DNA of 63,738 bases, counting the filler, from Guillardia theta CCMP2712 (lineage: Eukaryota; Protista; Cryptophyta), in the NCBI RefSeq assembly GCF_000315625.1. It is 4 parts of 4 records of this genome, joined end to end, with 100 filler letters (N's around TTAATTAATTAA, not from the genome) between each part and the next. Parts side by side here need not be neighbours in the genome. Positions count along the whole stretch, not along the records: positions 30,874 to 52,552 come from NW_005434593.1; 3 more parts are not named here. One strand, given 5' to 3'. The translations under genes and the position numbers were made by a program. Below the pieces are notes generated by a model. That model made no database searches and was not told the origin of the DNA. It was given only the letters and a program-made list of their open reading frames with translations. Below, one piece after another: positions 6,300-49,243 of this stretch. Positions within the stretch are counted from its first letter, which is position 1; every line of letters starts with the position of its first letter.

Positions 6300-9200
6300 A
6301 ATCAGCGATCATTCAGACTATCCCTTCCTCTTTTGACAAGCTGGGAAAACCTCGTCCCCTTCCTTCAGCCGTTCTTCCCTGTTGCCAGCATCTCGCGTGC
6401 TCGTCGCAGTCTGCGACTGTTCTTGCCGTCCTCCTCCTCCTCTCCGCCCATCGCACGCAGGGCATCTTCTGCTGCCTCATGCGGCCTCCGCAACCTGGTG
6501 AACGTCAGTGAGCGACTATCTTCCTCCTCCTACCTCAGCAGAACTTCGCTCCTGTTGCCCCACAGTTGTCGCTTCAGCCGCGTCTCTTTCCAGCACAGGA
6601 GGAGGGCGAACGAATAGCAGAAGAGAGCAGCAGGATAGTCGCTGACCTCTGCCATCTTCTTGTTCCCTCGCATCTTCACCTCCTCTGCCAACTTTGTACA
6701 AATTCTCCTCAAAGCATTCTCCTCCTCCTCCTCCTCCTGCTTCCCCATCTCCTCCTCTTCCCCCTCCTCCTTGCTGTCTCTTGTCAAGGAGCATGCAACC
6801 CTCTGCAGTGTCGCTAGAGCTTCTTGGTTCAGGATTCCTCGCCGCCCTTGTCGCATCATCTATGCAGGAGGCTTCAACATCCTCTTCGAGCTCCTTCCTC
6901 CTCTACCTTGAGCGCCAGCGCTATCGTCTCTGCTGCCGTCCCTGTCATCTGCGCCAGGATGAAACTCTCGCCGCTTTCCTCAAGGTCGAAGAAGCCCTGC
7001 ATCAGCTCATCCTCCTCCTCCTCCTCCTCCTCCTCCTCCTCCTCCTTTACCTTCACCCACCACACCTTTCCTTGAGCTGCCTCGCCTTCTTCAGTCTTTG
7101 CCGCCTCTCCTTCCAAGTCCACAGCAACTGCATCTCTTGGTTCAGCAGGAGCTGAGAAGTTTGCGGACGAGGAGGAGAGAGAAACGAGCAAATCGAGGCG
7201 CGAGGAAGAAGAGGAGCAAGTAAAGGGAGAGGAGGACAGGAGGAAGGAGCTCAGGGGAGGTGGGGTTGAAGGGGAGGAGGAAGCTAGGGTCCATCTGACC
7301 GGCAAGCAGGCGAACCAAGCGGTCTGGCATGCCCTCAGCGTCCAGCTGGAGGAGGAGATCGCCGCAGCCGCCGGCATCTCTGCTGGCTTCAGCGAGGAGG
7401 AGGAGGTTGAGGAGCGAGTCTGAGAGCCCCAGTATCCCCGCCTGCTCCCTCGACCTTCAGCTGCTCCTTCCTCCCTCTCCATCTCGCACCCACCTGCAGC
7501 TCGAGTAGACTGCTTCCCCTCTTATCGTCCTGGCAGCGCACGAGCGCCTTCCCCTGCTTCAGCTGCTCCTCGACATGCCGGAAGCAGCTGAGAAGCAGAG
7601 GCAGGTAGCCGCTCAAGCTGAAGATGACGAGGATGATCACGAGAAGCCACATGATGACGATGAAAGTGAGAATGAATGAAAAAATGAAAAAATGAATGAA
7701 AGAGGGAGGGAGTTGAGTGATGCATCTTTGAGCTATGGGGAGGAAGAGGAGGCTTACATGATTCGCTTCCGTAGCTGGAGGAGATGCAGAGAAACCTCAT
7801 GAGCAGAATACCTGAAGCAAGTGAGATGACGCGGAGAGGGAGAGAAAAAAGATCGACGAGAGCGAGTTAAAGAGAAGAAGCAAGAGAGAGAAAGAGCAAT
7901 GGGCAGCATCCGAAAAAGCATCAGGTAAATGAGGGCGACGTGGACAAGGACGAGGAGAAAGGGGTTAGGAAGCGAACATGTCCGGATGACGCGAGAGCGA
8001 GGAGATGATGTAGGCGATTGGCTCGAGAATCTGCTGACTTGTTAGCAAAGAGAAGCGGAAAGGACGAGGGAGAGGCGAGGAGGGGACAGGAGACAAGGAA
8101 GTCGAAGGTAACAACAAGCAAGGACAAGGTGAAGAAGAAAAGGGAGCGAAGAAGTTGCTGGTCGAGGTTGGAGGGCAGGGAGGCACCTGAAAATCATTTT
8201 GGAGGGCAGGAGGGAAGGAGGAGCTGCTCAGGTTCAGAGGCGATGAGAGCATATGAGGGCATACCAGTAGGAGGCCTCGAGGTAGGAGAAGAGCTCCTTC
8301 ATGTTCTCCTGCGCCAGGCACGCGATGCAACGTCACAGATAAGGCACGGGGAGGCACCAGAAGGAGGGGAAGAGAAGACGAGGATACACCGGTCATGTCA
8401 TCTCCTCCTAGAACCACCCCTTCCTCCTCCTTCTACCTGCTGCCCACACCTCTGCTCCTCTCTTCTCCTTGCAGGTTTCCTCTACTACACATGCTACTCC
8501 ACAATCGCCACTTTGGCCATTTTCAATATCATGACATTTATCAACATCTACATCTACATCTACATCTACATCTACATCTACATCTACATCTACATCTACA
8601 TCTACATCTACATCTACATCTACATCTACATCTACATCTACATCTACATCTACATCTACATCTACATCTACATCTACATCTACACATCTACATCTCCATC
8701 TTCATCTTCATGACAACCATCGTGTCATTCACCTCAATGGATTCACCAAATTCAGGTACGTCAGGACGTGCAAGGCTCAGACAACAAATCTGAAGGGAAG
8801 GTAAGAAAGAAGAAAGGGAGGAGTAGGCAGAGATCTCAAGGAGCGACGAAGAGAAGAAAACCCGGGGGGGAGGCACAAGGTGAAAGAGGAGGAGAGGAGG
8901 AGTGGAGGAGAGGAGGAGACGAAGAGGACTTCAGGACCTGCGCGATGGACTGGCCGGAGGATTCAAGGAGGTGAAGACGGAAGACGTCGGAGCCCGTGAG
9001 AGGATGCGGGGGCGAGCGATAGAGCTCGCGGTACTCCTGCTGCTTCTGCTCATACTCCTCCTTCTGCATGGCTGGGCAGGATGAGAGACAAGACAAGAGC
9101 CTCAAGTCAAGATCGCATGTTGCTACCGGATGCATGCAGGAGACACGCCATGACGTCTGTCAACGAAGAACTTCGAGCCTAACGAGCACACTAACCAACA

Positions 9201-33142: not shown

Positions 33143-34473
33143 GATGACTTGAACCTGCCCTCTTCCTTCCTCTCTCTCTGTCGTTCCTACCCGCCGCAAC
33201 TCTTGCCCCTGCATGCACCAAACCCTGGCACACCACCAGGGTCTCTTTCTACTGCTCTCTTCACCCGGTAGTACAACCCTGAACCTGCGGCTCCTAACTG
33301 CCAGAAGGAACTAGTGACCCGCCGGGCGGCCCTCACTACTCTCAGTCAGGAGGCCCGGTTGCCGCCCGGGCCCGGCGTCCGATACGGTCGGCTGGGGGCC
33401 AGCTGCCACCGCGGGCCGCCGGGGCTGCCCGGCTCGCGAACGGTCCGATCAACCGGGGGGGCCGCTCCCGGACTGGGAGGCTCAGCGCCATGATTCTTTG
33501 AGTAAAGAGGAGTGTGATTCGTCGGACGGTCCGAGTCACTGAGTACAGTGAGTCACGGCACAATGACCAGCGTACGGACCACTCCTGACGGTGGCGCCCG
33601 ATGTACATCGAATGGCGTTGAATTCAACCTTATCTCGAGTTGGGGTCCGACGGCTCACGTCAGCAAAAGATAAGGGAGCCATGTGACCGGCGCCGCCCGC
33701 CACCTCAGCTACGAGTCATAGTAATACAGTGCTATGAGAGCTCAGCCGCTGCACAAGTCTGTCAGTTGAGCGGTAAGGTTAAAGTAACGCCGTCGTGCCG
33801 GCGATTGTGCCGTGACGGACCGTCGGCATGTGTGTAAAGCCTCCGTTTGCTCCTAGAAGACTGGGTGTCAGGCTTGTAAAGTAAGTCCTCTCGACAGCTG
33901 CTTGAGGTTTAGCCTACGCTCCCCGCCAGAGTCGTAGAGATAAGTCACTGGTACCGTCCGTACTGAAGGAGGTTTGTAGGGATTTCAACAATATCATTAC
34001 TAAACCTTCGACTCTCCTGATTGTCCTCGTACTGAACTTTAACTTACCTTTGAGTAAAGTTGGACTAAACCTTGGGTACAGACTAGTCAACCTGGTGCGA
34101 GTCGGGAGGTACCAATCTTGTAGCTGACACCACCCTACCCCCATGTTAGCCGAACAAAACGGTTGAACTCCTGAAATCTTTTCTCTACCCCCTCGAGCGT
34201 CTCTTACCACCCCTCTCCGGTCTGCCTACACCTCTTCGTACTACCCCCTCCCCCTCCCTCCTCAGATCTAGGAAGATAAGATGTTCCCCTTATTAGGATC
34301 AAAGCTCGCCAACTGCAGTCACTTTCCCCCTCCCTCCCTCCCTCCCTCCCTCCCTCCCTCCCCTCTTCCTCTATCCCTACATCCAAACCACTCTCTTACT
34401 TCCGCTCTTGATCCTACATTTGAGCATCTACCACCCTATCCTTCGTGACAAACCTCAGAACACACAAGTAACT

Positions 34474-34734
34474 ATGACTAAGGGCGATTGCTGTGCTCTT
34501 CCTCCCTCTCCCGTGCCCTCGCTGGCTTCTTCTTGGCTTCACGACATCGATTCTACCTCACGCAAGTCTTCTGCTGATGAAGGTAGCGGCTCCAAGACTC
34601 GCGTGGGGAGGAGGCTTCTTCAGTCATCCCTCGAGCGAGAGGACGGAAGCTGGACCACGATCTACACGAGCAGCTACGAGCCGACGGCGAGGAGGCTGTA
34701 CAACCAGAGCATCTCGTGGGACATCATGAACTGA
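34474..34734 (+). CDS. Small unknown-family protein, copy 1 (86 aa, C-terminal RLLQSS/YNQSIS module)
   Basis: Intronless MTKGDCC...VGRRLLQSSLEREDGSWTTIYTSSYEPTARRLYNQSISWDIMN; four paralogs nearby. Confidence 0.8.
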   Translation: MTKGDCCALPPSPVPSLASSWLHDIDSTSRKSSADEGSGSKTRVGRRLLQSSLEREDGSWTTIYTSSYEPTARRLYNQSISWDIMN

Positions 34735-36494
34735 GCTGCAGGGATAGAGAGGAGGGCGGAAGCTGGCGAGAAGGGGAGGGGAGGGGTCTAAGGAGGAGGA
34801 CGAAGGAAGTGTACATTAGTGTGAATAGTAAAACAGAGATATGAAGATCATATCGGAAGGCTCATCGAGAACCCTTGTCTTACCTGGCAGCGGTTGTAAG
34901 GGACATCACTCTAGTGTGCTATGCTGGCAAAGGAATATCAAAGGACGAGAAGCATGTAAAGGCTAGATGAGTCTGCAGTGTGACCCCTTATTACGTACGG
35001 GTGGCTTCCCTAACTCCTGGTACGAAGAGGAGCAGAAGCTCAGAAGCAGCAAGAGCTCGATCTAGGCGAGTGTGCGAGTCTGCTCGTGGACTCCCGCCGG
35101 TGCTCGCATGCCTTCAAGTTCGAACGTGCCTGTCTGCATTATCCCCAGGGGGTAGACAAATGTGCTGGGGTAGGGACGGAGGGAAGATGAACGTTTGTGG
35201 TACCCGTGGGCTGTCAGTACGCAAGGTACCCAAACCATGCATGTTCGATAAATGTGTCTATAAACCCCCCCCTGCCTCCTCTCTTGCTTGATCTCACTCT
35301 AACCATCCCTCATTCATTTTCTTTCTCTCCTGTGGTAGGTTTCATGTCTCTAACTCTCCCCTCCCTCGCCTTCTTCCTTGGCATTCATGATGGTTTCTTC
35401 CGAGTCTCTCTCCCACTTTCCACAGGTTCTGCTTGCAACTATGAGATTTGGTTGGTCGTGGGCTCTCTCGTAACCATCCACCTTTCCCAACCTATCTGTC
35501 CGCGTCGTCTCTTTTGTCATTTTTATTGATACCAAGCTTTCAGTCCCTCAGTTCACGAGTTTCTCATTAACATCGCCGCATAGCTCCCGACTGTGCTGTC
35601 AGTCACAGTTGACTCAAATTGATTGTTCACGTCATTCCCCGATACCTGTAGTACGTAATGTACGAATATAAACAAAACCATTTCCGCGTGCCTAGGTCTG
35701 TCCGTGTGTCTTTCCAATACAATGTCTCAACCACTTCACGAATTTCTGTTCTGTAACACAACATCAAGTTCTGTGGGAAAGCTAGGGCTAACAACCCCGC
35801 AAGCTCGCCCACGGAGCTGTCTGCGGTGTAGAGATGGCCCCACGACTAGTGTCGATAGCGGAGCTGTCTGCGGTGTAGGGATGACTAAACGCACGGCAGC
35901 TCTCGCTCGACCCATCCCCTTCCCGTGACACCTTGCTTGTGCTCCCTCCTGCCTCCTTCCGTCCAGCTCTCGTCTCCCTACCAGCCTCCTGCTGCGCCTT
36001 AGTCGAGCCTTTGCTCAGACCCTTGGCAGGTGATATGCAAGAGACAGGCGGCGGCAGAGTCTTCGCGCTCTTCCTGCCTTGGACATGCTTGAGGCCGGGA
36101 CGAGGGGGAGGTTTCAGAAAGGCAGACACCGGCTTGGGATCTGATCTCGGCAGTAGCTTAGACTTCTCGGACCCTGGCGGTAGAGTAGCCGACAGAGGCT
36201 TGAGGCCTTTCCATCTCCTCTCCGTCTCCGTCTCCGTCTCCGTCTCCCTCGCCCAGTCGCTCTCAGACTGCCGGGGGCTGTCGTCGTTGGGCTGGAAATG
36301 CTTTGCCGAGAGCGCCCTTGAGCTTGCGAGGCAGCCCGTCCGTGTAGGCCCTTGCCCATGACGAGCTTCTCGCGACGACGTCTACAAGCCTTGTAGGCGG
36401 CAAGCAAGCGTACTCTTGCGCTAGAGGCTGGGTGAGCATGGTGCAGATGTCTGTCTTTCGCGTGCTCTTCATGTACAAGCCCTGGTCTAGAGTC

Positions 36495-36890
36495 CTACCG
36501 ACTCTCTCTACGGGACGGTCGGGACTGACGAGCCGGGGCCGGGCGTCCGATCGACCTACACTCGAAGCATTGCGATCGCTGCTGGGCGTGCTGGCAGAGC
36601 ACTATCTCTCCTGCACTCCCGGCGAAGAGAGCGGCGAGGTCGGTGCCGGCAGAGAGCATCTGGGCGACGTCTGGCGGGGGCTGGGGGCCGAGGCAGGCGG
36701 GGGAGCTTGCAGCGGGAGACAGCCTGCAGTCCTTGCATCGGGATCGTCTCCGCCCATGGATGCAGATCGTCTCCGCCCATGGATGCTGGCTCCCCCGCAC
36801 TCCTTGCAGCAAGATCGCTGGCGCCCATGGCCCCGCGGAGCTCTCTGTCCTCGCTCGCGCCATGTCTCGCGTCAGGATCAGCGCAAACAT
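36495..36890 (-). pseudogene. Protein with CxH..RSxCxxC zinc-ribbon-like repeats, frameshifted
   Basis: HGRQRSCCKECGGAS, ICIHGRRRSRCKDC and LCQHAQQRSQCFEC. A 23-bp tandem duplication near 36742-36787 shifts the frame between repeats 1 and 2. Confidence 0.6.
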
Positions 36891-37920
36891 GCCGTCTGGT
36901 GTGCGGTACCGGTGAGGGCCCGGAGGGCCCTCACCCTTCCTCCCCCCCTGCAGCCGGGCGCCCGCAGGGGGGGAGGAAGGGTGAGCCTGCAGGGGGGAGG
37001 AAGGGTGAGCCCTTTTTTAAGTTCGCCCTTCCCTTAACCCCTGTGACAACTCAGCTGATCAATCTCACCATCCCATCTGTGACAGAGGTCCGATCACTGT
37101 CCGATCACTGAGTCCATCCGATCCTAGCACGAACGTCGAATGATTCTCACTAGCCTCGGACCCTGATAGCTTTGAATGAAGTGAATCACTGAGGCTCTTC
37201 AACGACCTTGAGTAAAAGTCAGCACCGTGACCGTCAAACAAACGAACTGAGTCAGCCAAAGACTTGAAGTTGGCCAGCCGCTGAGCGGCCATGACTCAAT
37301 AGTACCATACTGCTTTTAACTCAACTTTGAGTCGGAGTAAATGTTTGACCGTGCTCGGAGCCTCGGAGGTTGACTGACGGACCCCTACCCCCACCCACCC
37401 CCTCCCCCCACCCCTCTCCCAGAGACTCTGACGTTTACTCAAAGTAAAGTTAATCTGACACTCTTTGGGCAGCTCCCGGATCGGTCTATAGCCGCATCTC
37501 AACCGTCCTCTACCTCAACGATTTCCTAAGTTAGCTCATTCACCATTCTCACATCCTTGCTCCATACCATCCTCCTGCCCTACCCCCATGGACCAGGCAC
37601 CCCTTTTAATCAACGAACCCCCCCCCTCCCCCAAAGCTACAAAATCGCACTGTTGGCTCGATTCCGTCACTCGCCCCCTCTCTGTAGCTTCCCAGTCTCA
37701 CTCTCGGTCGCTGTCCCTCCTCCCAGGCTCCCTTCCTCTCATACTTTTCTTCCTACATTCTCTCTCAGCAATCCCTCCCCCCCTCCCCCTCCCCCTCCCC
37801 ATCCCCACAACCCGTCTCGCGTACAGATCGTGCCAAAGTACCATCCTTTTTTATTGTGACTGTATGGATTGAATCACACAACCGCACAAGAATTCAAGTC
37901 ATAGATAAAGCCAGCAAACC

Positions 37921-38283
37921 ATGACCAAGGACGACTGCAGCTGCACTTTTTCTCCGTTCCCCTCCCACGTCGAAATGTCGCCGTCCACTATTCCTTGCTT
38001 TCACGGAATCGACGCGATCCCACGCAAGCCCGCTGCTGATCAAGGCAGCATCTTAGAAACAGGCATCATGCGCTCAAACTTCGATGAGCAGCAAGAGGAC
38101 TGGCCTGAAGCCAGCTTGGAAGAATCCTTCAACCTCCCTCGCAGCATCTCGAGGATTGGGAAGAGGCTGCTTCAGTCATCGATCGAGGCGGACGGAAGCT
38201 GGACGGTGATATCTGCAAGCTGGTATGATCCAACGGCGAGGAGGATGTACAACCAAAGCATCTCGAGGACAACGGCAAGCTGA
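37921..38283 (+). CDS. Small unknown-family protein, copy 2 (120 aa)
   Basis: MTKDDC...SLEESFNLPRSISRIGKRLLQSSIEADGSWTVISASWYDPTARRMYNQSISRTTAS. Confidence 0.8.
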   Translation: MTKDDCSCTFSPFPSHVEMSPSTIPCFHGIDAIPRKPAADQGSILETGIMRSNFDEQQEDWPEASLEESFNLPRSISRIGKRLLQSSIEADGSWTVISASWYDPTARRMYNQSISRTTAS

Positions 38284-38918
38284 ACAACAGAATCGATCGC
38301 ACAAGCAAGACAACAGTGGAAGAATTTAGGGACGATGTTATGGATAGTGTGATGCTGTTTGTTGATATAGTGTACAACTGTAATATTAAAGGCTTTGATG
38401 CGTTGAAGCATACACTTTGGACTTCTTGCAGTCTAATGGGGTATCCTGTCAGGATACCCCATTACGAAAACTAAAGATGCTCCTCCCAAGAGAATCATCG
38501 CAATCTTGTGGACGTGCGGCTGCTGAAGATGCCATCTGGTAGGACGCAGGGAATCTCCAGCCTCTAAGGAGTCCTCAGAGTGCACTGCATTGTGTTGCTC
38601 AGGTTCTGAAATGAGTCCCTTCGAGTGTACAACGTCCAATTCACTAATAAACTCAACTACTACTACACCGAGCCGTAAAGATGCTAATCAATAACTTTTC
38701 AACAACAACTCATCAACCTCTACACTGAGAAGGCTATCTGGAGGGTCCATTCCTCTTACATTTTGTTTGTTTTGTTCGAGTATTCTTCTTGTATCTTTGC
38801 TTTACTATTTACAACCAGTGTACACTTATTTACAGCCTGCCTCCTTGTTCCTCCCTTAAACTCCCTCCCCTCCCCTCCCCTTCTCGCCAGCTTCCGCCCT
38901 CCTCTCTATCCCTGCAGC

Positions 38919-39170
38919 TCAGTTCATGATGTCCCACGAGATGCTCTGGTTGTACAGCCTCCTCGCCGTCGGCTCGTAGCTGCTCGTGTAGATCGTGGTC
39001 CAGCTTCCGTCCTCTCGCTCGAGGGATGACTGAAGAAGCCTCCTCCCCACGCAAGCCTGGGAGACGTTGCAGTGGAAGGTAGCGCCGATGCCGTGAACGC
39101 AAGGATTCAGCGAGGGCATGTCCATGTGGGCGGGAGAGGGAGGGAGAGTACAACAATCGCCTTTAGTCAT
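38919..39170 (-). CDS. Small unknown-family protein, copy 3 (83 aa)
   Basis: MTKGDCC... with the C-terminal 43 aa identical to copy 1. Confidence 0.8.
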   Translation of the reverse strand: MTKGDCCTLPPSPAHMDMPSLNPCVHGIGATFHCNVSQACVGRRLLQSSLEREDGSWTTIYTSSYEPTARRLYNQSISWDIMN

Positions 39171-40342
39171 TGGAAATGGATTTGCAGAGTGAGGGATCAA
39201 ACTTGAAACCGATGGCAATCAAAGTGTACGAGTGATAGCTGTGTGAGGTCTCGTTTGCTAGCGATGGAAGATCTCTGATCGTTTCGTGCTCTTGAGAGTG
39301 TCTGTGAGCTCAAGAGAACAAGTGTAGAAGTCAGGAAGTGAGGGAGGACTTAATTTCTCGTGGTACGATGAATTGGGCAACAATCTGGTCATCCGAACAG
39401 ATCGGACCGGTGTGTATAACGTTCACGAAGGGGGTGGGGGTAGTGTCAGCGACAAGATAAGTCCGTTCGTGCAGACTCTGATAGGCCGGGAGCTTGGAGC
39501 CTTCCGAGGTAAAGTCCACTGATGAACAGGCGCGAGGTTAGGGCCCTTGAAGAGTATTTTGAAGGATGTGAGCGTTTCCCTACTCGTCATCTCAAGAAGT
39601 CGCCCGACGGGCCGTGACGCCGGAGGGCCGGCCAGAGTCATGGGCCACTCACGAATAGAACAACGATGATAGCTCGAGGCCCTGAGGATTTTACTTGTAG
39701 CCGAAGCTGAGTTGTGTTTGTCCTCGTACTGATTTTTAACTTAACTTTGCGTAAAAGACGGGGAGTCCCAGCGCCGTGACCACAGTTAACTGCATAACTC
39801 ACCCTCGGCTTTGAGTAAAATGTAACTCAGCACACACGTAGTACTGATTTTAAGTAAAAGAGGTTGGCACTGAATGTGCTCCGACTCGGCCCAGTGGAAC
39901 TCAGTGAATCAATCAGCGGATGATCAGGGCGGATGATCAGGGCGGTGATCTTGACGACAGCATTGTGACAACTTTGACGCGCACGGGCACCCATCTGTCA
40001 TGCATCATCCGATTTGGTTGCGCAATGGCAGTCACGGATTGAACACAGGGGAGTCTGATCCAAGGAGAAGAATGCACCATCAAGTTACAAGTGCAAAAAT
40101 CCTAAGCACCGCTGCCAGTCACACCAATGTGAGCCAATGCGAGCCGACGGTGGCTGTACAACTTGGCGAGGGAGGGAAGGGGTCTAAGGAGAAGGGAACA
40201 AGAAGATTGTAAGAATTCAAGGTCCAGGTGTGCGAAATTTGATGCGTATATAGACAGGTCACGCAGGATCAAGGATTGCGGAGAAAAGGCTCAAATGGCT
40301 GGGTTTATTTACATTTCATCGGCTCCGCCTTTTCGTCCCCGT

Positions 40343-40711
40343 CTATTTCATCGTCTCCCTTGAGATGCTTTGATTGTACAGCCTCCTCGCCCTCCCGTCG
40401 TGCAAGCTCGCGTACGTCGTGGTGTATCCGCCGTCGGGGTCGTAGGAGGACTGAAGAAGGCGTTTGCCTATTCTGGGGCTACGGGGGGAGTTGAAGGAGT
40501 CCTCAAGGCTACTGGCAGAGCAGTCGTCTTGCACAGGGTAAAGGCTTGAATGAGTGCGTACAAGATCGAGGATGCTGCGACTAGCAGCAGGCTTGATTGA
40601 GCCGCTCGTAGACAGACTGTAGATGTCTGAGGAGGAGGATTGCTTTGAAGGCGACCGTAATGGGTGGTCGATGATTATTTCGGACGCGGAGGGATTGCTG
40701 GTTTCGATCAT
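40343..40711 (-). CDS. Small unknown-family protein, copy 4 (122 aa)
   Basis: ...SLEDSFNSPRSPRIGKRLLQSSYDPDGGYTTTYASLHDGRARRLYNQSISRETMK. Confidence 0.8.
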   Translation of the reverse strand: MIETSNPSASEIIIDHPLRSPSKQSSSSDIYSLSTSGSIKPAASRSILDLVRTHSSLYPVQDDCSASSLEDSFNSPRSPRIGKRLLQSSYDPDGGYTTTYASLHDGRARRLYNQSISRETMK

Positions 40712-40763
40712 CTTCTCAGTGGATCGGTTATATGCAGTATCGAGCCTTCGAAATTTCTTCGAT

Positions 40764-41318
40764 CTTCTTCGCTTCTTCGCTTCTTCGCTTCTTCGCTTCT
40801 TCGCTTCTTCGCTTCTTCGCTTCTTCGCTTCTTCGCTTCTTCGCTTCTTCGCTTCTTCGCTTCTTCGCTTCTTCGCTTCTTCGCTTCTTCGCTTCTTCGC
40901 TTCTTCGCTTCTTCGCTTCTTCGCTTCTTCGCTTCTTCGCTTCTTCGCTTCTTCGCTTCTTCGCTTCTTCGCTTCTTCGCTTCTTCGCTTCTTCGCTTCT
41001 TCGCTTCTTCGCTTCTTCGCTTCTAGCTTCTTCGCTTCTTAGCTTCTTCGCTTCTTCGCTTCTTCGCTTCTTCGCTTCTTCGCTTCTTCGCTTCTTCGCT
41101 TCTTCGCTTCTTCGCTTCTTCGCTTCTTCGCTTCTTCGCTTCTTCGCTTCTTCGCTTCTTCGCTTCTTCGCTTCTTCGCTTCTTCGCTTCTACGCTTCTT
41201 CGCTTCTTCGCTTCTTAGCTTCTTCGCTTCTTCGCTTCTTCGCTTCTTCGCTTCTTCGCTTCTTCGCTTCTTCGCTTCTTCGCTTCTTCGCTTCTTCGCT
41301 TCTTCGCTTCTTCGCTTC
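40764..41318. repeat. 8-bp tandem repeat (CTTCTTCG)n, about 70 copies
   Basis: Directly visible, with few variants. Confidence 0.95.
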
Positions 41319-41947
41319 CTGGGCTCCACCTGGCTTAAATGTTTTATGTTCCGACGACTGACCAATTGACCGTCAGCCGAATCTTTGACTGTTTTTTTTC
41401 TTCGACGAGATGAGCGAGTTAACTTTAAAAACACTCACGCTAAAATAGAGAACGTGCACCACGGTACTGATCCCGCCTTGTCAAGTTATGGCAGAGCCTC
41501 CGCTTCTCTTTCCCTTGAGACTTGATGAGACTCGAGAATTTCTCTCACTTCTCTTGACTGAGAAAGTCACCACTGAAACGACGTGAAGTGAGAACTCAGA
41601 ATGGGCGGCCAGAGGGTGGTCGACGGGGTTGCCGAGAGGTGTATCTAGTTGATGATGAGTGATACGATAAGAATGTTTACTACCGACTGATCTGGAGATA
41701 ACCGAGGAAACCCGCTTCATGACTACAACTGGAGAGAAAACAAGCCCGCCTCGTGAAGGTGTCTTCAAAATGCCATAATTTGAGTAAAAATCAAGCGATA
41801 TGAGATGTGCTGGTTGTGATTACATGTTGTTTGAAGTTTGCGAGTCCTTTACTTTTCTTACTAGATCATTCATATCGCACATCCATATCATACATCGCAG
41901 ATTTCCTCCCCTGCTCGACTACTTCACTGCTTCTACAGTTATCCATC

Positions 41948-42328
41948 CTATTTCATCGTCTCCCTTGAGATGCTTTGATTGTACAGCCTCCTTGCCCTCC
42001 CGTCGTGCAAGCTCGCGTACGTCGTGGTGTATCCGCCGTCGGGGTCGTAGGAGGACTGAAGAAGGCGTTTGCCCATCGAAGGACTGCTCATCGAAACATG
42101 TTTTGAAGATTTTGTTTTGGAACATTGGCTTGAATTGAAGGAGTCCCTCAGATTCGGAAATGGCCACTCAAGAATCTCTTCTCTGCTAAAAGGGTCGTGT
42201 TCAAAAGACAAAGCAGAGATATCAGCTACAATGTTTTCCCCGGAAATCTTAAGTTCTTCGGGACATTGCACTGATGGAGCATCCTTGTGGATATCGAAAT
42301 CGATGGGAATGGGCACGTTGTCGATCAT
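41948..42328 (-). CDS. Small unknown-family protein, copy 5 (126 aa)
   Basis: C-terminal 41 aa identical to copy 4; mostly unrelated N-terminus apart from LRDSFNS. Confidence 0.8.
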   Translation of the reverse strand: MIDNVPIPIDFDIHKDAPSVQCPEELKISGENIVADISALSFEHDPFSREEILEWPFPNLRDSFNSSQCSKTKSSKHVSMSSPSMGKRLLQSSYDPDGGYTTTYASLHDGRARRLYNQSISRETMK

Positions 42329-42877: not shown

Positions 42878-45677
42878 ATGGCGGCCGAAATGCTGGGCAA
42901 GGGAAAGCTGCTGGTGGTGGTGATGGTGATGGCGACAGGTAAGAGGAGGAGGAGGAGAGGAGGAGGAAACAGATGAAGAAGAGAAGGGAGAGCAAGAGTA
43001 AGGAGGTCGGGTGAGAATGGTGAAATGCAGCGGCGGAGGATCATACAGATACAAAAGACATATAGGGGACAACAGGCGTAAGGTAGACATAGAGCCTGAA
43101 GTAACGATGGATTGGGTAGAGAAGGAGGAAAGAAACGAAGAGAGGTAAAAACGAAAACTTTCTGTGAAGCGAGATCATACTATACAGGAAGAAAGAGGTT
43201 TGGATAGAATGTGGAGAATTTGGGCAATGAACAAGGGTCAGAAGTGAAAGATTCCCTCCCATGATGAGGATTTGCTGAAATCACTACAGGAGTCTCAGGC
43301 TTCAGCAGCTTTGGATCGCTCAGGTCACTCAGACCCCTTGCCTCCTCCATCCATCTTATCCCTCCCTGCCACTCGCAACCCTCTCCCCCTCCGCCTACCA
43401 ACCCCCCCTCTTCTTCTCCTTCCTCCCCTCCCTCCCCAACTCCTCTTTCCTGCTTACACATGCTGACACACAGCAGTTTGCACTCCTCTCCAAGACTTTC
43501 TCATCTTCCGATCAGACCGAGACGGGGAGATGTGAATCTTAGAAGGCTGGAGATGGTCGCAGACGCCGACATTGTTAATGGAGTATTCCCTGTGAGTGCA
43601 GACGCGCTCAAATACTTTCTGTGAGTATTGAAGTGTCATCTCTTTCATCTTTATCTCTATCTACATGATTATCTTCACCTTCATCGCCATGTCAATCATT
43701 TGTGTCACATTCGTTACTCATCATCTCCATCTCCATCATCATCTCCATCATCATCTCCATCATCATCTCCATCATCATCTCCATCATCATCTCCATCATC
43801 ATCTCCATCATCATCATCATCATCATATTCATAATCATCATCTCAATCATCATCAACATCACCATGAATCATTACTATCAGCTCCATCACCATACGAGCA
43901 CCCACAAGCAAGTGACTTTTGACGCCGCAGCGCCGGAGGAATCTCAGCATCAGTCTCGCACGGAGGGACGGTACCCATAGACGGTCCGACCGTTGAATCT
44001 TGTCAAATCGCTGGAGACGATTGTAACCTTCTGCCGTTACAGTTGTCAAGACAAGGCTTCAGACTGACCCTTCTATGAGAAATTCGAATTTCATAGTGGG
44101 AACGAAAACTATCATCAGGAACGAAGGAGCTTCGACGTTGCTGGGGGGTCTGGGTAGCACCTTGATAGGATATGCGATCCAGGGGTCGCTCAAGTACGGG
44201 TTCTACGAGCTTTTCAAGCCCGTCGTCCTTGCGAGTGAGAACGTGGGGGGGATGAGATGGTGGTTGAGGTAGCGAGTGAGGCAGAGACAGAGACGAGGAC
44301 GAGAACTTGAAGGGAAGAGAAGAAAGAGAATAACAGAGTCCGAGACAACGGCGAGGAAGTCAGAAATTTGAAAGCAAAGGAAGGAGGAAGGGAGAGGAGG
44401 AAGGGAGGAGGGAATGGGGGTCAGGGAGGGAAGTGAAGAGAGGGAGGAAGAGGGAGGGAGGAAGGGGGAGGGATAAATTGCAGACACGCGTTGCGTTTCG
44501 CTCTCCCCTGTTCTCAGCGTCGCCTTACAGCTTGTGAGCAGAAGTGACGGACCAGAAGCTCGTTGCCTTCCTCCTCGCTGCCGCCATGGCTGAGCTGATC
44601 GGCAGTACGGCTCTCTGTCCCCTAGAGGCCACCAGGATCCGACTTGTCGCCGATCCCTCCTACGGAAGGGAAGTTTTCGATGCTCTCCCACGACTGATCG
44701 AAGAGAAGGTATACAGACCCCTCCTGCCTCCTCATCCATCCCTCAATCAACCCCCCCCTCTCGAAACCCTCTCCCCCTCCGCCTACCAACCCCCCCTCTT
44801 CTTCTCCTTCCTCCCCTCCCTCCCCAACTCCTCTTTCCTGCTTACACATGCTGACACACAGCAGTTTGCACTCCTCTCCAAGACTTTCTCATCTTCCGAT
44901 CAGACCGAGACGGGGAGATGTGAATCTTAGAAGGCTGGAGATGGTCGCAGACGCCGACATTGTTAATGGAGTATTCCCTGTGAGTGCAGACGCGCTCAAA
45001 TACTTTCTGTGAGTATTGAAGTGTCATCTCTTTCATCTTTATCTCTATCTACATGATTATCTCCTTGTATTTCGTCTTCACCTTCATCGCCATGTCAATC
45101 ATTTGTGTCACATTCGTTACTCATCATCTCCATCTCCATCATCATCTCCATCATCATCTCCATCATCATCTCCATCATCATCTCCATCATCATCTCCATC
45201 ATCATCTCCATCATCATCTCCATCATAATCATATTCATAATCATCATCTANNNNNNNNNNNNNNNNNNNNNNNNNNNNNNNNNNNNNNNNNNNNNNNNNN
45301 NNNNNNNNNNNNNNNNNNNNNNNNNNNNNNNNNNNNNNNNNNNNNNNNNNAGAGCTACTCCCTCCTCCAGTCAGCAGACTTCGAGCAGACTCCTGCCATC
45401 AAGTTCACCATCTCCACCCTCTGCGCGATGGTAAGGGATGAGCGGGGAAAGGAGGAAGGCGGTGGAAGAGGAAGTTGTGCGGGGAAGGAAGGGAGGAGGG
45501 GGAGGGGGAGGAATGAGGAGGCGGGAGGCGGAGGACTAGGAAGAGAGCAGGGGGAGACAGAGAGAGGGGGGAGGAGGGGGACGGGGAGGGGAGACAGAGT
45601 GATAGGGGAGGGGAGGGACGGGGAGGGGTGGGGGGAGGAAGCGAGAAGGAGGCAGGCTGCAGATCCAGAACGAGGAA

Positions 45678-46559: not shown

Positions 46560-48898
46560 AATCTTGGCTCACGTTGTGTTGTCTGTCATGTTGTGATGAG
46601 AGAAATTTCCCATGACATCTGAACATCAACGACGATGAGAACATGCTAACTTGCATTGAGAAGAAGCACCTGCAACGTTGGCGGATGTTTTGTTCAAGAG
46701 CGATTTGTGGGTGTAACCGAACTTTGCGAAGTGATGTTTCAGGCCCTCGATGATACCTGGAAGAGACGATGAGAAGAAAGATGAATTGGGATGGAAGGAA
46801 GCAGATAGAAAACGTTAGGAGAGGAGGACGGGGATGAGAAGAAAAGGAGAGGAGGGGAGAAAAAGCGACAGGGCGACAAGGATGGGGAAGCAGAAACAAC
46901 ATTCTACAACGCGAAACACAAAGGGCACATTTACAATATCCACAAGAGCAAGGAACTTGATCACAGATTTTCAAACATGGGAGGGCCAGATTTGAAAACA
47001 TCAACGAAAGCATCAAAATGAGCGCACCTCCTGCGTGCTTCCTGGTAGCTAAGATCACTTTCTCTAAGTTCTCGGAGTTCCTCCATCGGACAAGCCCTTC
47101 AGCAGCGTTCGCCACGAGAGCTCCGTGAACTCCTGAGTTGTTCAAACGTCAGATCCCAATCACAAGACAGAACAAAACTTCTTCATCATCTCCATCTCCA
47201 TCTCCATCTCCATCTCCATCTCCATCTCCATCTCCATCTCCATCTCCATTTCCATCTCCATTTCCATCTCCATCATCGTCGTCGTCGTTGACAAATTTTT
47301 GTTCTTCACACATCACATTTTCCAACACAAGAGACGTATTCAGACAGCATCTCCACAGCTCGACGACAACCTCCAACAATACCGTCCACAGGCTCAACAA
47401 GAATCCTCTACCCACCATCTCTCGTGATCTCGAACAGAGGCACGTCGTTCTCCCCATCCCCCGACACCATCATCTGTAAGCATGTCAGACAGCAGCGATA
47501 TGTGACTACGAGCATCACATTCGTCTTGTTGAAGCCCAAGATAGCAGAGCAGTGCAGAGTCGCGCTCCCCTTGCTGACCCCAGGAGGCACTAGCAGGACG
47601 TACCACTCGTACCCGCTCGACGATTGTATAGCGTCGAACTTCAGTCCCATCCTCCTCCTCAACGACGTGTCGAGGAGGGACAGGATCTTCTCTGAGACAT
47701 TCCTGCTGTTGGCTGCCAGCACGAACATGGGCTGTCCATTGTCATCTGCCAACGGCAGGAATTTGGTGATGTTGCTGCGGAGGGGAGCTAGGGTGACATT
47801 GACTGCGTCTCGCAGCTTCGGCCAGTTCCACAGCTCGTTCAACTTCTTCCTCCATTGCGCGTCAGGAACGGCCGTATGGTTGTCCCCGTCGAACCAGAAG
47901 ATCTCCGTCCCTTCGGAGCAGATGAGCGCCGTCGGCCGCTGCAGCACATCTCGATGGATCAGATCGAGGGCAGAGTGGAATGGTCGTCCGGTGTTATACA
48001 GGAGGCAAGACCCCTTCTTCTTGTACTCGTCGTTCCAGACTGTGAAGAAGTTCTTGATCTGCTCGTCATCACCAAGCAGCGTCCCGTCGAGGTCAGTCGC
48101 CAAGAAGACAGCGCTGTCTTCTGCCTTGGGGTATATCCTACACTTCCTCTCAAAGTCCTCGACCTTGGTCTCTCCATTCTGCAGAACAACCTTGTACTTG
48201 TAGGAGATGATGTCGGTATCGAAAATGGCTTCTCCTATCCAGTGCTGCTGTCTGATCTTGGACTTGTCCTGGTGCAACAGGATCTCGACCTTGACCCCCT
48301 GCGCGCCGCCTCTCCCACCTATCTCAACCACCACGTAGACTTTGGAGGCTGCAGGGATGCTGTCCAGGAGCAAGGAGAACCTCACTTGCGGCTGACTTCT
48401 CTTCACTGGGAAGGCTTCGTCGAACTTGTCGATGGTCACGGCGCCGCCCTCCTCCTCCTTCTCAATGTACTTGGATATCATCCTAGTAAAGCTGCTCCAA
48501 ATCCCCGTGGGCCCCTGAGTGTCTTCTCCTCCTCGGAGGTTAAGTGAACGACGTCCCACGACCTCCTCTTCTCTTCCTGCTGCATGATCTCTTGCCGCCA
48601 TGGCGTCTTGTCTTGCCGCCATGGCGTCTTGTCTTGCCGCCATGGCGTCTTGCCTCGTCCATGGCCGGATCTCCCTTGCATGGGCGATCAAACCTGGGTT
48701 CCGGATCCGCCTGCTTCCCCATCCTCCTCCTACCACATCCTGTGCTTGATCTACCAGGGTTCTCCTCTCTCCTCCTGACCCTGCTCCTAGTCCTGCTCCT
48801 AATCGTGCTCCTGCTACTCCTCCTCCTCCCTCCGCCATCGCCATCGCCATCATCGCCGTCACTGCGAGTAGCCGCATGGAGGGACGCAAGCAGGGCAT
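46560..48898 (-). CDS. Sucrose-phosphatase-like HAD IIB hydrolase with CBM20-like domain and signal/transit leader; 3' end approximate
   Basis: HAD motifs ATDLDGTLLG, YNTGR, SKGSA and SGDGEND, with later exons LVANA and GIIEGLKHHF. Upstream VRFSL..KVYVV..HWIGEA..ISYKYKVV resembles CBM20. Confidence 0.85.
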
Positions 48899-49243
48899 GA
48901 TGAGTAAGAGGGGGGAAGGCATAGGGGTAGGGGGTCATACCATCGCAGATTGGGTATGTCACAAAGGGGGGTAGAAAAGCTAAAAGTGGGGGGTGAATGT
49001 AGTACCAGGGTGGGTGGAGATACATGGAATGCATGGGATGGGTATGTCAGCGGATGAGGGGTTGACATATTAGATTACACTTATGAGGGTAGGGGTAGTG
49101 TTGGGGCCAGAAGGGGTTCTATTTACTGGGTATTGGTAGGGTAGGGTGGTTCTGCTGTGATGGCGGCGGGGAGGGAGGGTCGAGCGAGCGGCAAGAGGAG
49201 GACAGGAGGAGGAGGAGGAGGAGGGAGAGGTAGGCAGTATACA

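Follow-up and report, generated by a model that had tools for sequence, protein, structure and literature searches.

The genomes of protists such as Guillardia theta hold very many lineage-specific genes. Described systems that invite comparison with the small-gene family reported here are orphan families whose tandem or inverted arrays show concerted evolution, the plant KRP/SIAMESE-type CDK inhibitors, bacterial Ig-like/cadherin-like repeats (Big_9, Cadherin_4) and the WW domain (PF00397), the last of which is a three-stranded sheet with two conserved Trp residues, 20–22 apart, the second followed by a Pro. The plant inhibitors we take to be similar in size, at about 100 aa, and in build: a disordered body that varies, a C-terminal element that is short and conserved, and basic-x-Leu motifs. 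The module family presented below has no counterpart among described families, folds or papers; full-text literature searches returned no paper on three family genes lying outside the window, nor on LLQSS together with Guillardia.

Within the window (the whole stretch of DNA that was analysed, 63,738 nucleotides), scaffold JH993045.1 of the G. theta CCMP2712 assembly GCA_000315625.1 contains five intronless ATG ORFs of 83–126 aa, lying on both strands:

34474..34734, plus strand: g1, 86 aa, module at 34603–34731; missing from public gene models
37921..38283, plus strand: g2, 120 aa, module at 38155–38280; annotated "hypothetical protein"
38919..39170, minus strand: g3, 83 aa counted from the ATG, module at 38922–39050
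40343..40711, minus strand: g4, 122 aa, module at 40346–40471; missing from public gene models
41948..42328, minus strand: g5, 126 aa, module at 41951–42076; the annotation gives 125 aa

The initial annotation had described five small ATG ORFs in mixed orientation without introns, and all five were located. The single-exon reading agrees with the compact public models (a 120-aa product over 363 nt and a 125-aa product over 376 nt, against neighbours of 291–348 aa over 1.9–3.3 kb) and with RNA contigs that are colinear with the genome. Three of the five copies in the window have no annotation, the family being otherwise represented in public records by scattered "hypothetical proteins". When the window and the related loci were translated in six frames and searched with a profile of the module, the five ORFs were recovered with E = 1e-25 to 1e-28, far above the chance level, and nothing else in the rest of the piece reached E < 0.1. 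An Rfam scan gave only sub-threshold miRNA-like matches, on a GC-rich tandem repeat at 36919–36993.

The motif string reported initially is present at the end of each of the five ORFs, which close with [VIM]G[KR]RLLQSS-x3/4-DG[SG][WY]T-...-ARR[LM]YNQSIS-x5-stop; alignment of the last 48 residues gave 20 invariant positions. Across the family the consensus is [KR]-x-[LM]-L-Q-S-S-x(3,4)-G-x-[WY]-T-x(9,10)-[AV]-R-R-[LMV]-Y-N-x-[SY]-[IML]-[SK]-x5-end. The module, 42 or 43 aa in length, has a constant position at the C-terminus and ends at the stop codon. The N-termini are diverged and rich in Ser and Pro, as had been noted, their S+P+T content being 26–40%. They retain the motif MTK.DC.C in g1–g3 and L-x-[DE]-S-F-N in g2, g4 and g5, with g2 possessing both (MTK.DC.C and L-x-E-S-F-N). 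To judge by their sequence, these residual motifs are traces of common, whole-gene descent.

The initial annotation had proposed that an HMM of the module be searched widely, and the range that emerged is limited to G. theta and Hanusia phi. When 1.84 billion representatives were searched exhaustively with a profile, the full module was found only at the C-termini of proteins of 120–146 aa, all belonging to G. theta, Hanusia phi or MMETSP records. Word-index searches added no further taxa, and scans of viral and metagenome contigs revealed no relatives. So far, then, the family appears in Guillardia and Hanusia (Geminigeraceae) only. G. theta has at least two further clusters (JH993056.1 and JH993006.1). 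Locus L002 carries four copies on alternating strands, with inverted repeats of 413 nt (98%) and 222 nt (95%), and locus L003 carries two copies; degenerate copies lie at L002 7859–8293 and L003 6433–6723. Counting these two degenerate loci, the family in G. theta comprises 11 loci or more, spread over three clusters, a figure which is a lower bound because three loci (~20 kb each) were read. Overall the products range from 83 to 146 aa, the clusters consist of inverted or tandem copies with degenerate ones among them, and two subfamilies are 24–36% apart, chiefly at third codon positions.

No domain had been recognised initially, and a match to a known Pfam or transposon family, a lack of transcripts or a module dN/dS near 1 had been named as contrary findings. 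Pfam-A matches were scattered and isolated, whether for the five window proteins or for the full set of 14 aligned members: each fell in one member (E = 0.014–0.24), and none came near the gathering score. Neither a transposase nor an RT domain was found in the family proteins, and no terminal repeats surround the copies. The WW domain offered a lead, being presumably similar in size (~40 aa) and loosely so in its G-x-W...Y-x-N spacing. It was rejected on several grounds: the module gave no WW match in Pfam at E up to 10 and no PDB sequence match; a second Trp is present in just three of 13 members (g1, g3 and L003-b), the subsequent Pro being absent; the W-to-Y spacing is 4–5 residues longer in the module; and AlphaFold2 places a helix over RR.YN, where strands 2–3 would be expected. 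The Big_9 and Cadherin_4 repeats share a "dGsYT...Y.g" hairpin motif with the module and accounted for three large matches in the exhaustive search. The large matches P0003, P0006, P0009 and P0007 proved to be bacterial Ig/cadherin-like or simple-repeat proteins in which a 19-residue hairpin motif is matched many times. Each match covers 19 of 50 profile positions at no more than 5.6 bits, the totals are sums over 26–55 repeats, and LLQSS and RR.YN are both absent; homology was accordingly rejected.

The structure was modelled with AlphaFold2, one model per subfamily, each built on 13–14 sequences. Both have a disordered N-terminus and a C-terminal helix (pLDDT 75–87), an amphipathic element in which ARR[LMV]YN..[IM]S is placed in both subfamilies. 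A two-stranded beta-hairpin is present in one of the two models and is weak (pLDDT ~66). The three beta strands of a polymer-forming unit, as suggested initially, thus give way to a predicted helix plus a weak hairpin. Searched against PDB chains, the module profile had no match up to E = 10; VIA-align, run on 48,161 chains, never reached Z = 2, and a fold search of the ESM Atlas gave TM-scores of at most 0.36. These blanks are weak evidence, given models whose confidence is low to moderate. A zf-BED row in the fold search (47 residues, TM 0.3) was dismissed as a generic beta-beta-alpha shape, the family having no Cys/His ligands. Feature searches of the ESM Atlas with g4 and the L002 copy gave 0.76–0.77, the noise level.

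On balance, the best overall explanation is a native Guillardia/Hanusia gene family with a selected C-terminal tail that probably docks on a partner, and we lean slightly towards it. With no signal peptide or membrane segment apparent, the products would be soluble proteins of the cytosol or nucleus. Judged from architecture alone, a soluble small protein with a partner-docking tail is the most likely role. The tail, an amphipathic helix after a possible hairpin, most likely serves as a docking element and folds upon binding. Its target would be either a conserved cellular partner or a second tail with which it pairs, and the variable N-termini may diversify what reaches the partner of the tail.

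Two pairs of genes in the window share identity patches that are confined to the module and its immediate vicinity:

34587..34786 = 38867–39066, inverted orientation: g1/g3 patch, 132 nt of module and stop 100% identical, plus ~55 nt of 3' flank
40343..40471 = 41948–42076, direct orientation: g4/g5 patch, 127 of 129 nt identical from stop codon to module start

Beyond the patches the likeness falls away. The N-terminal coding parts of g1 and g3 are only 62% identical, and their flanks are no more alike than shuffled sequence; the same applies to both the N-terminal coding parts (47%) and the flanks of g4 and g5. Modules 98–100% identical in paralogue pairs whose remainder is unalignable indicate that short-tract gene conversion acts on the module, holding it near-identical between some paralogues with otherwise unalignable sequence. 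The arrays evolve through duplication, decay and short-tract gene conversion.

A conserved element of 32–45 nt was also discovered near the family ORFs, with two copies in the window:

34021..34052, plus strand: conserved element, copy 1
39718..39749, plus strand: conserved element, copy 2, 548 nt upstream of g3

In each of the three G. theta loci it lies at a distance of 375–733 nt from family ORFs, a spacing with a uniform-placement P of ~0.001 at a threshold picked after seeing the data. Words of copy 2 are very abundant in contigs from the RNA runs, and the flanks of those contigs do not match the window. Rfam gave no match to the element, and no inverted partner lies close to it. It was considered as a spliced-leader RNA gene and rejected, its sequence differing from the 17-nt G. 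theta spliced leader (PMC5619915); the leader itself is absent from the window (no matches with two or fewer mismatches). Perhaps the tail works autonomously, as a cassette for docking or pairing that gene conversion keeps uniform, the N-termini diversify, and the RNA-abundant element co-controls what would be a Guillardia/Hanusia regulatory family; we regard this fuller picture as speculative, with something like one chance in five. If true, the docking cassette and the element would form a lineage-specific, condition-induced module (e.g. stress, cell cycle) with no counterpart elsewhere.

Alternatively, the tail may assemble with itself into homo-oligomers or polymers, making these structural proteins. 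The hydrophobic residues of the helix are spaced i, i+3/4 and a beta-hairpin may come before it, an element of 43 aa would hardly be stable by itself, and one paralogue is abundant in one study. We nevertheless consider self-assembly rather improbable: the models lack the three strands, repeats of a low-complexity or amyloid-like kind are absent, and no solved or predicted fold was matched.

A special case of the docking model would make the products cyclin- or APC/C-directed regulators, with KRLL/RRLL and RRLY serving as cyclin-docking or degron-like motifs. The [KR]-x-L-type motifs of the module resemble, we assume, RxL cyclin-docking motifs, and small disordered proteins with conserved basic-x-Leu motifs, the strings being present in most members, would suit such an analogy. 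The motifs are low in information, however; one family member has RTML at the first and the second varies between L, M and V. No Pfam similarity to CDK inhibitors was found, and the second motif lies within the predicted helix, so that we give the proposal little weight.

Slightly more doubtful still is the possibility that the identity patches, at 130–200 nt, mark a cassette that is mobile or carried on a repeat. The ORFs would then be borne by a dispersed element or have arisen around it, perhaps along with the nearby 32-nt element. Such a cassette would account for near-identical patches amid unalignable sequence, for copies in mixed orientation and for an element near family ORFs in all three loci. 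A module that is always C-terminal at the stop, N-terminal motifs that point to whole-gene descent, and subfamilies whose divergence falls mostly at third codon positions argue otherwise, as do the missing terminal repeats, transposase and RT domain and copy flanks at shuffled-sequence level. Moreover, the Hanusia homologues are under purifying selection over their whole length.

This selection was estimated from Hanusia versus Guillardia comparisons, in which dN/dS is 0.10–0.11 for the module and 0.17–0.47 for the N-terminal part, and differences at codon positions 1, 2 and 3 number about 37, 34 and 64. Among the window/L003-subfamily paralogues module dN/dS is 0.12–0.60, and between the two subfamilies pairwise values climb to 0.8–0.9, at saturation. 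All these values are approximate because dS is saturated at 1–2 and orthology of the Hanusia and Guillardia copies is assumed. Seven invariant and five near-invariant residues, the frame and the stop position have been kept over saturated synonymous divergence in two genera. With a value of ~0.10, well below 1, the module is under purifying selection. ORFs on the antisense strand of the modules were discounted as the frame under selection: their frame is inconsistent and their wobble positions are not the most variable ones.

Transcripts were detected. Unspliced contigs from presumed RNA runs span g3 at 38827–39315, a low-depth contig from a presumed RNA run covers 40439–40755 at g4, and the g5 transcript is abundant in run X2 (one study; depth 495), about 35–60 times deeper there than in the two other studies, with contig ends mapping at 41930–41947 and 42074–42103; g2 has no contig in any presumed RNA run. 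The paralogues are thus expressed very unequally in runs of contig form that are presumed, not certain, to be RNA; one raw-read run gave 46 reads of uncalibrated strandedness. In Hanusia, mRNAs of 938 and 948 nt each have the family ORF as their main sense ORF, one of the two has a poly(A) end, and the L002 copy at 8547–8966 has an identical protein among the MMETSP records. Coding is well supported by the low Hanusia–Guillardia dN/dS, the polyadenylated Hanusia mRNAs, the unspliced RNA contigs and a host-like GC3 (0.67, against 0.69 in the adjacent S6PP exon). All five ORFs are protein-coding genes native to the nuclear genome of G. theta.

That they might be decaying or neutral, recent orphan duplicates without function, is consistent with the two degenerate copies, the absence of g2 from the presumed RNA runs and dN/dS of 0.6–0.9 in some paralogue pairs; given the persistence of frame, stop and conserved residues and the low module dN/dS, we think it very improbable. 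Least probable of all is the initial suggestion that they are precursors from which the KRLLQSS–RRLYNQS stretch is excised, e.g. by an enzyme akin to site-1 protease, and possibly amidated. Although [KR]-x-[LM]-L resembles, we believe, site-1-protease sites, the processed peptide is made unlikely by the lack of a signal peptide, which had been observed initially and is borne out by hydropathy windows of 13 members that show neither a signal-peptide-like hydrophobic stretch nor a membrane anchor (Kyte-Doolittle, first 40 aa: maximum 12-residue mean ≤1.5, 19-residue mean <0.8), by G-K-R in three of 13 aligned members (only g2, g4 and g5, the other 10 having GRR, NHR, QRR, TKR, TRR, ERR or CCK), and by conservation that continues past the second motif up to the C-terminus.

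Scattered "hypothetical proteins" have now been given a family name and boundaries. The "undescribed system" of the initial annotation stands as an undescribed module in small intronless genes; "system" is too strong a word, what emerges being a lineage-restricted paralogous family rather than something of several components. The novelty is limited to the absence of a matching described family, fold or paper and does not extend to a mechanism; protist genomes being so rich in lineage-specific genes, one more orphan family is a small surprise to the specialist. Interest would be greater if the tail bound a conserved machine or if the 32-nt element were a shared control element. As it stands, the family illustrates the persistence of orphan genes in a model cryptophyte, with a short functional tail held by purifying selection and homogenised by conversion and a remainder that diverges beyond alignment.

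Compared with known systems, the plant KRP/SIAMESE-type CDK inhibitors have no sequence similarity to the family, and the likeness is one of analogy only. Orphan families whose tandem or inverted arrays evolve in concert differ in that they form a category defined by mode of evolution, not function, in which no described family has this sequence. It is with these arrays that the features are shared: a range of two sister genera only, clustered inverted or tandem paralogues, degenerate copies, short gene-conversion tracts and uneven expression among copies.

The piece at positions 30874-52552 is part of scaffold JH993045.1 of assembly GCA_000315625.1 (Guillardia theta CCMP2712) and is a cryptophyte nuclear contig that does not resemble human DNA. 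The initial annotation had described five small ORFs with a common C-terminal module here, and the ORF list and alignments bore out 5/5 of them, each initiated by ATG and ending in the module of 42/43 aa:

34474-34734, plus strand, g1, 86 aa
37921-38283, plus strand, g2, 120 aa
38919-39170, minus strand, g3, 83 aa
40343-40711, minus strand, g4, 122 aa
41948-42328, minus strand, g5, 126 aa

Across the last 48 residues of the aligned proteins 20 positions are invariant. Public gene models exist for g2 and g5 only, with one exon each, leaving g1, g3 and g4 unannotated. The claim that the ORFs lack introns, unlike the genes around them, agrees with these single-exon models and with the mitochondrial-carrier and sucrose-phosphatase-like neighbours, which are clearly intron-split. 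The latter (S6PP/Hydrolase_3; 47408-48922, minus strand) has a long N-terminal extension with a 21-nt tandem repeat at 48590-48652.

Six-frame scanning of two further G. theta sequences for the module revealed the same type of cluster twice more. The JH993056.1 locus (L002) holds four copies on alternating strands, one degenerate, arranged as two inverted pairs placed head to head, with 98% identity over 413 nt and 95% over 222 nt, and the JH993006.1 locus (L003) holds one intact and one degenerate copy, which brings the G. theta total to at least 11 loci. An alignment of all 13 members shows M1, S, G, R, R, Y and N without variation, and L, L, Q, S and T almost without it. Two subfamilies can be distinguished: one comprises the window and L003 copies and Hanusia phi protein P0005, with L-x-[DE]-S-F-N upstream of the module, and the other the L002 copies and Hanusia proteins P0008, P0010 and P0016. 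It is highly likely that these ORFs represent a true gene family. At L002 7168-8293, two family ORFs (proteins P0011 and P0015) lie on one MMETSP transcript; in P0015 the N-terminus of the copy at 7168-7554 is followed by the degenerate C-terminus of the one at 7859-8293. This fusion is either genuine or a chimera produced by assembly across the 222-nt inverted repeat.

When the module profile was run exhaustively with HMMER against 1.84 billion representatives, the full module was located only at the extreme C-terminus of proteins of 120-146 aa, which cluster look-up traced to G. theta, Hanusia phi or MMETSP transcriptomes. Word-index searches with a single protein and with the 13-member alignment returned G. 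theta and Hanusia phi and no other taxa, and relatives were not found in viral and metagenome contigs. The large matches in the exhaustive search were bacterial Ig/cadherin-like repeat proteins, which we rejected as non-homologous: they share only a 19-residue 'dGsYT' hairpin motif, repeated tens of times at no more than 5.6 bits per match. None of 14 members had a consistent Pfam match, no PDB chain matched the family profile at E values up to 10, and fold and Atlas feature searches with the family stayed at noise level.

Identity between paralogues in the window is patchy. The g1/g3 pair is 100% identical from the module through its stop codon (132 nt) and over about 55 nt of 3' flank; outside this patch, identity drops to 62% in the N-terminal coding sequence and to the level of shuffled sequence in the 5' flanks. 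In the g4/g5 pair 127/129 nt are identical, bounded exactly by the stop codon and the first module codon, and the remaining coding sequence shows 47% identity, the shuffled expectation. Since synonymous sites are identical within the patches, selection at the protein level cannot account for them. The simplest reading of these alignments is short-tract gene conversion, which would be limited to the sole stretch still similar enough to pair. A mobile cassette could also produce such patches, but is the weaker alternative: the position of the module is constant in every copy, subfamily differences fall mostly on third codon positions, and the N-terminal motifs show that the genes share ancestry over their whole length.

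Hanusia transcripts L004 and L005 were compared with their closest G. theta copies at the nucleotide level. The dN/dS values were 0.10-0.11 for the module, 0.17-0.47 for the N-terminal part and 0.15-0.32 overall, all of them approximate given saturated dS and assumed orthology; differences at codon positions 1/2/3 were about 37/34/64. Paralogues within the window/L003 subfamily gave module values of 0.12-0.60, and module comparisons between subfamilies were saturated. Family codon usage is host-like, with a GC3 of 0.67 against 0.69 for a neighbouring host exon, in a region of about 0.52 G+C. Antisense and other-frame ORFs across the modules were rejected as the frame under selection: their frame is inconsistent and wobble positions do not match variable positions.

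In both Hanusia mRNAs (938 and 948 nt) the main sense ORF is that of the family; one of the two has a poly(A) end, and neither has a spliced leader. The L002 copy at 8547-8966 has an identical protein in MMETSP. For G. theta, three presumed RNA runs from as many studies provided colinear contigs of 420-489 nt for g3 (38827-39315) and, for g4, a contig spanning its 5' half (40439-40755). The g4 module is also matched by contigs of 265-555 nt, yet at their ends these align exactly to g5 (41930-41947 and 42074-42103), so they are g5 transcripts. Contig depth for g5 was 495 in one study against 8-14 in the remaining two, and g2 had zero coverage in every presumed RNA run examined. The sole raw-read run yielded 46 reads, with an uncalibrated strand convention. 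In the g3 module, contigs of two studies depart from the reference at 38923, 38976 and 38981, by codon arithmetic N82S, a synonymous change in Y64, and S63R. Because g1 matches the reference at those positions, cross-mapping from it does not explain the differences, which represent variation between strains or alleles.

An element of 32-45 nt occurs near family ORFs at the following sites:

window 34021-34052
window 39718-39749
L003 7441-7472
L003 9264-9295
L002 10756-10787, a diverged form

The distance to a family ORF is 375-733 nt for all five copies, of which 4/5 are upstream, in either orientation; this proximity has P ~0.001 under uniform placement within the three loci, with a threshold picked post hoc. 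Conservation is confined to the core, and Rfam contained no match. Words of the element are very abundant in presumed-RNA-run contigs (summed depth 131-1452), with flanks unlike the window. It is not the G. theta spliced-leader sequence, and that identity was rejected.

Other repeats are also present. A perfect-looking 8-nt microsatellite, CTTCTTCG, in 69.5 copies, occupies 40764-41318 between g4 and g5. A 225-aa gene is publicly annotated across it (about 40728-41720, minus strand); this gene model is probably spurious because reading frames through the microsatellite translate to a KRRSEEAK repeat; the g4 frame is open upstream through it, without an ATG there. A 300-nt direct repeat (43364-43663 and 44752-45051, 99% identity), with matching (CATCTCCATCAT)n arrays, adjoins a 100-N assembly gap (45251-45350) inside the mitochondrial-carrier gene region and may be an assembly duplication. 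The GC-rich sequence at 36919-36993, a tandem or palindromic repeat of 23-24 nt, gave miRNA-family matches on both strands that fell below threshold (38 bits, where the gathering score is 76) and most likely reflect chance.

AlphaFold2 was run twice, with g2 and an L002 copy as queries and 13-14 sequences. Both models left the N-terminal part at low confidence and without structure, and both placed a C-terminal helix over [AV]RR[LMV]YN..[IM]S... (block pLDDT 75-87), in which, judged from the sequence, hydrophobic residues recur with i, i+3/4 spacing. Only the first of the two models showed a two-stranded hairpin (LLQSS / G.WT..), at pLDDT ~66. These models lend no support to the three-strand, polymer-forming unit suggested in the initial annotation. 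Its alternative, a processed peptide, is likewise unsupported, as hydrophobic stretches that could form a signal peptide or membrane segment are absent from every member. N-terminal parts are mostly acidic; modules of the window subfamily are basic and those of the L002 subfamily near neutral. The proteins would probably be soluble, and the conserved tail might serve as a docking or pairing element, a role we propose only tentatively.

We conclude that the ORFs form a family of small proteins that is native, under selection, expressed in part and restricted to its lineage, with concerted evolution of the tail. The earlier interpretation stands in part: the family is undescribed, but the fold and peptide proposed for it do not hold. 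Because nothing known matches, the family counts as new. The G. theta genome is rich in orphan families, and this is one among many.
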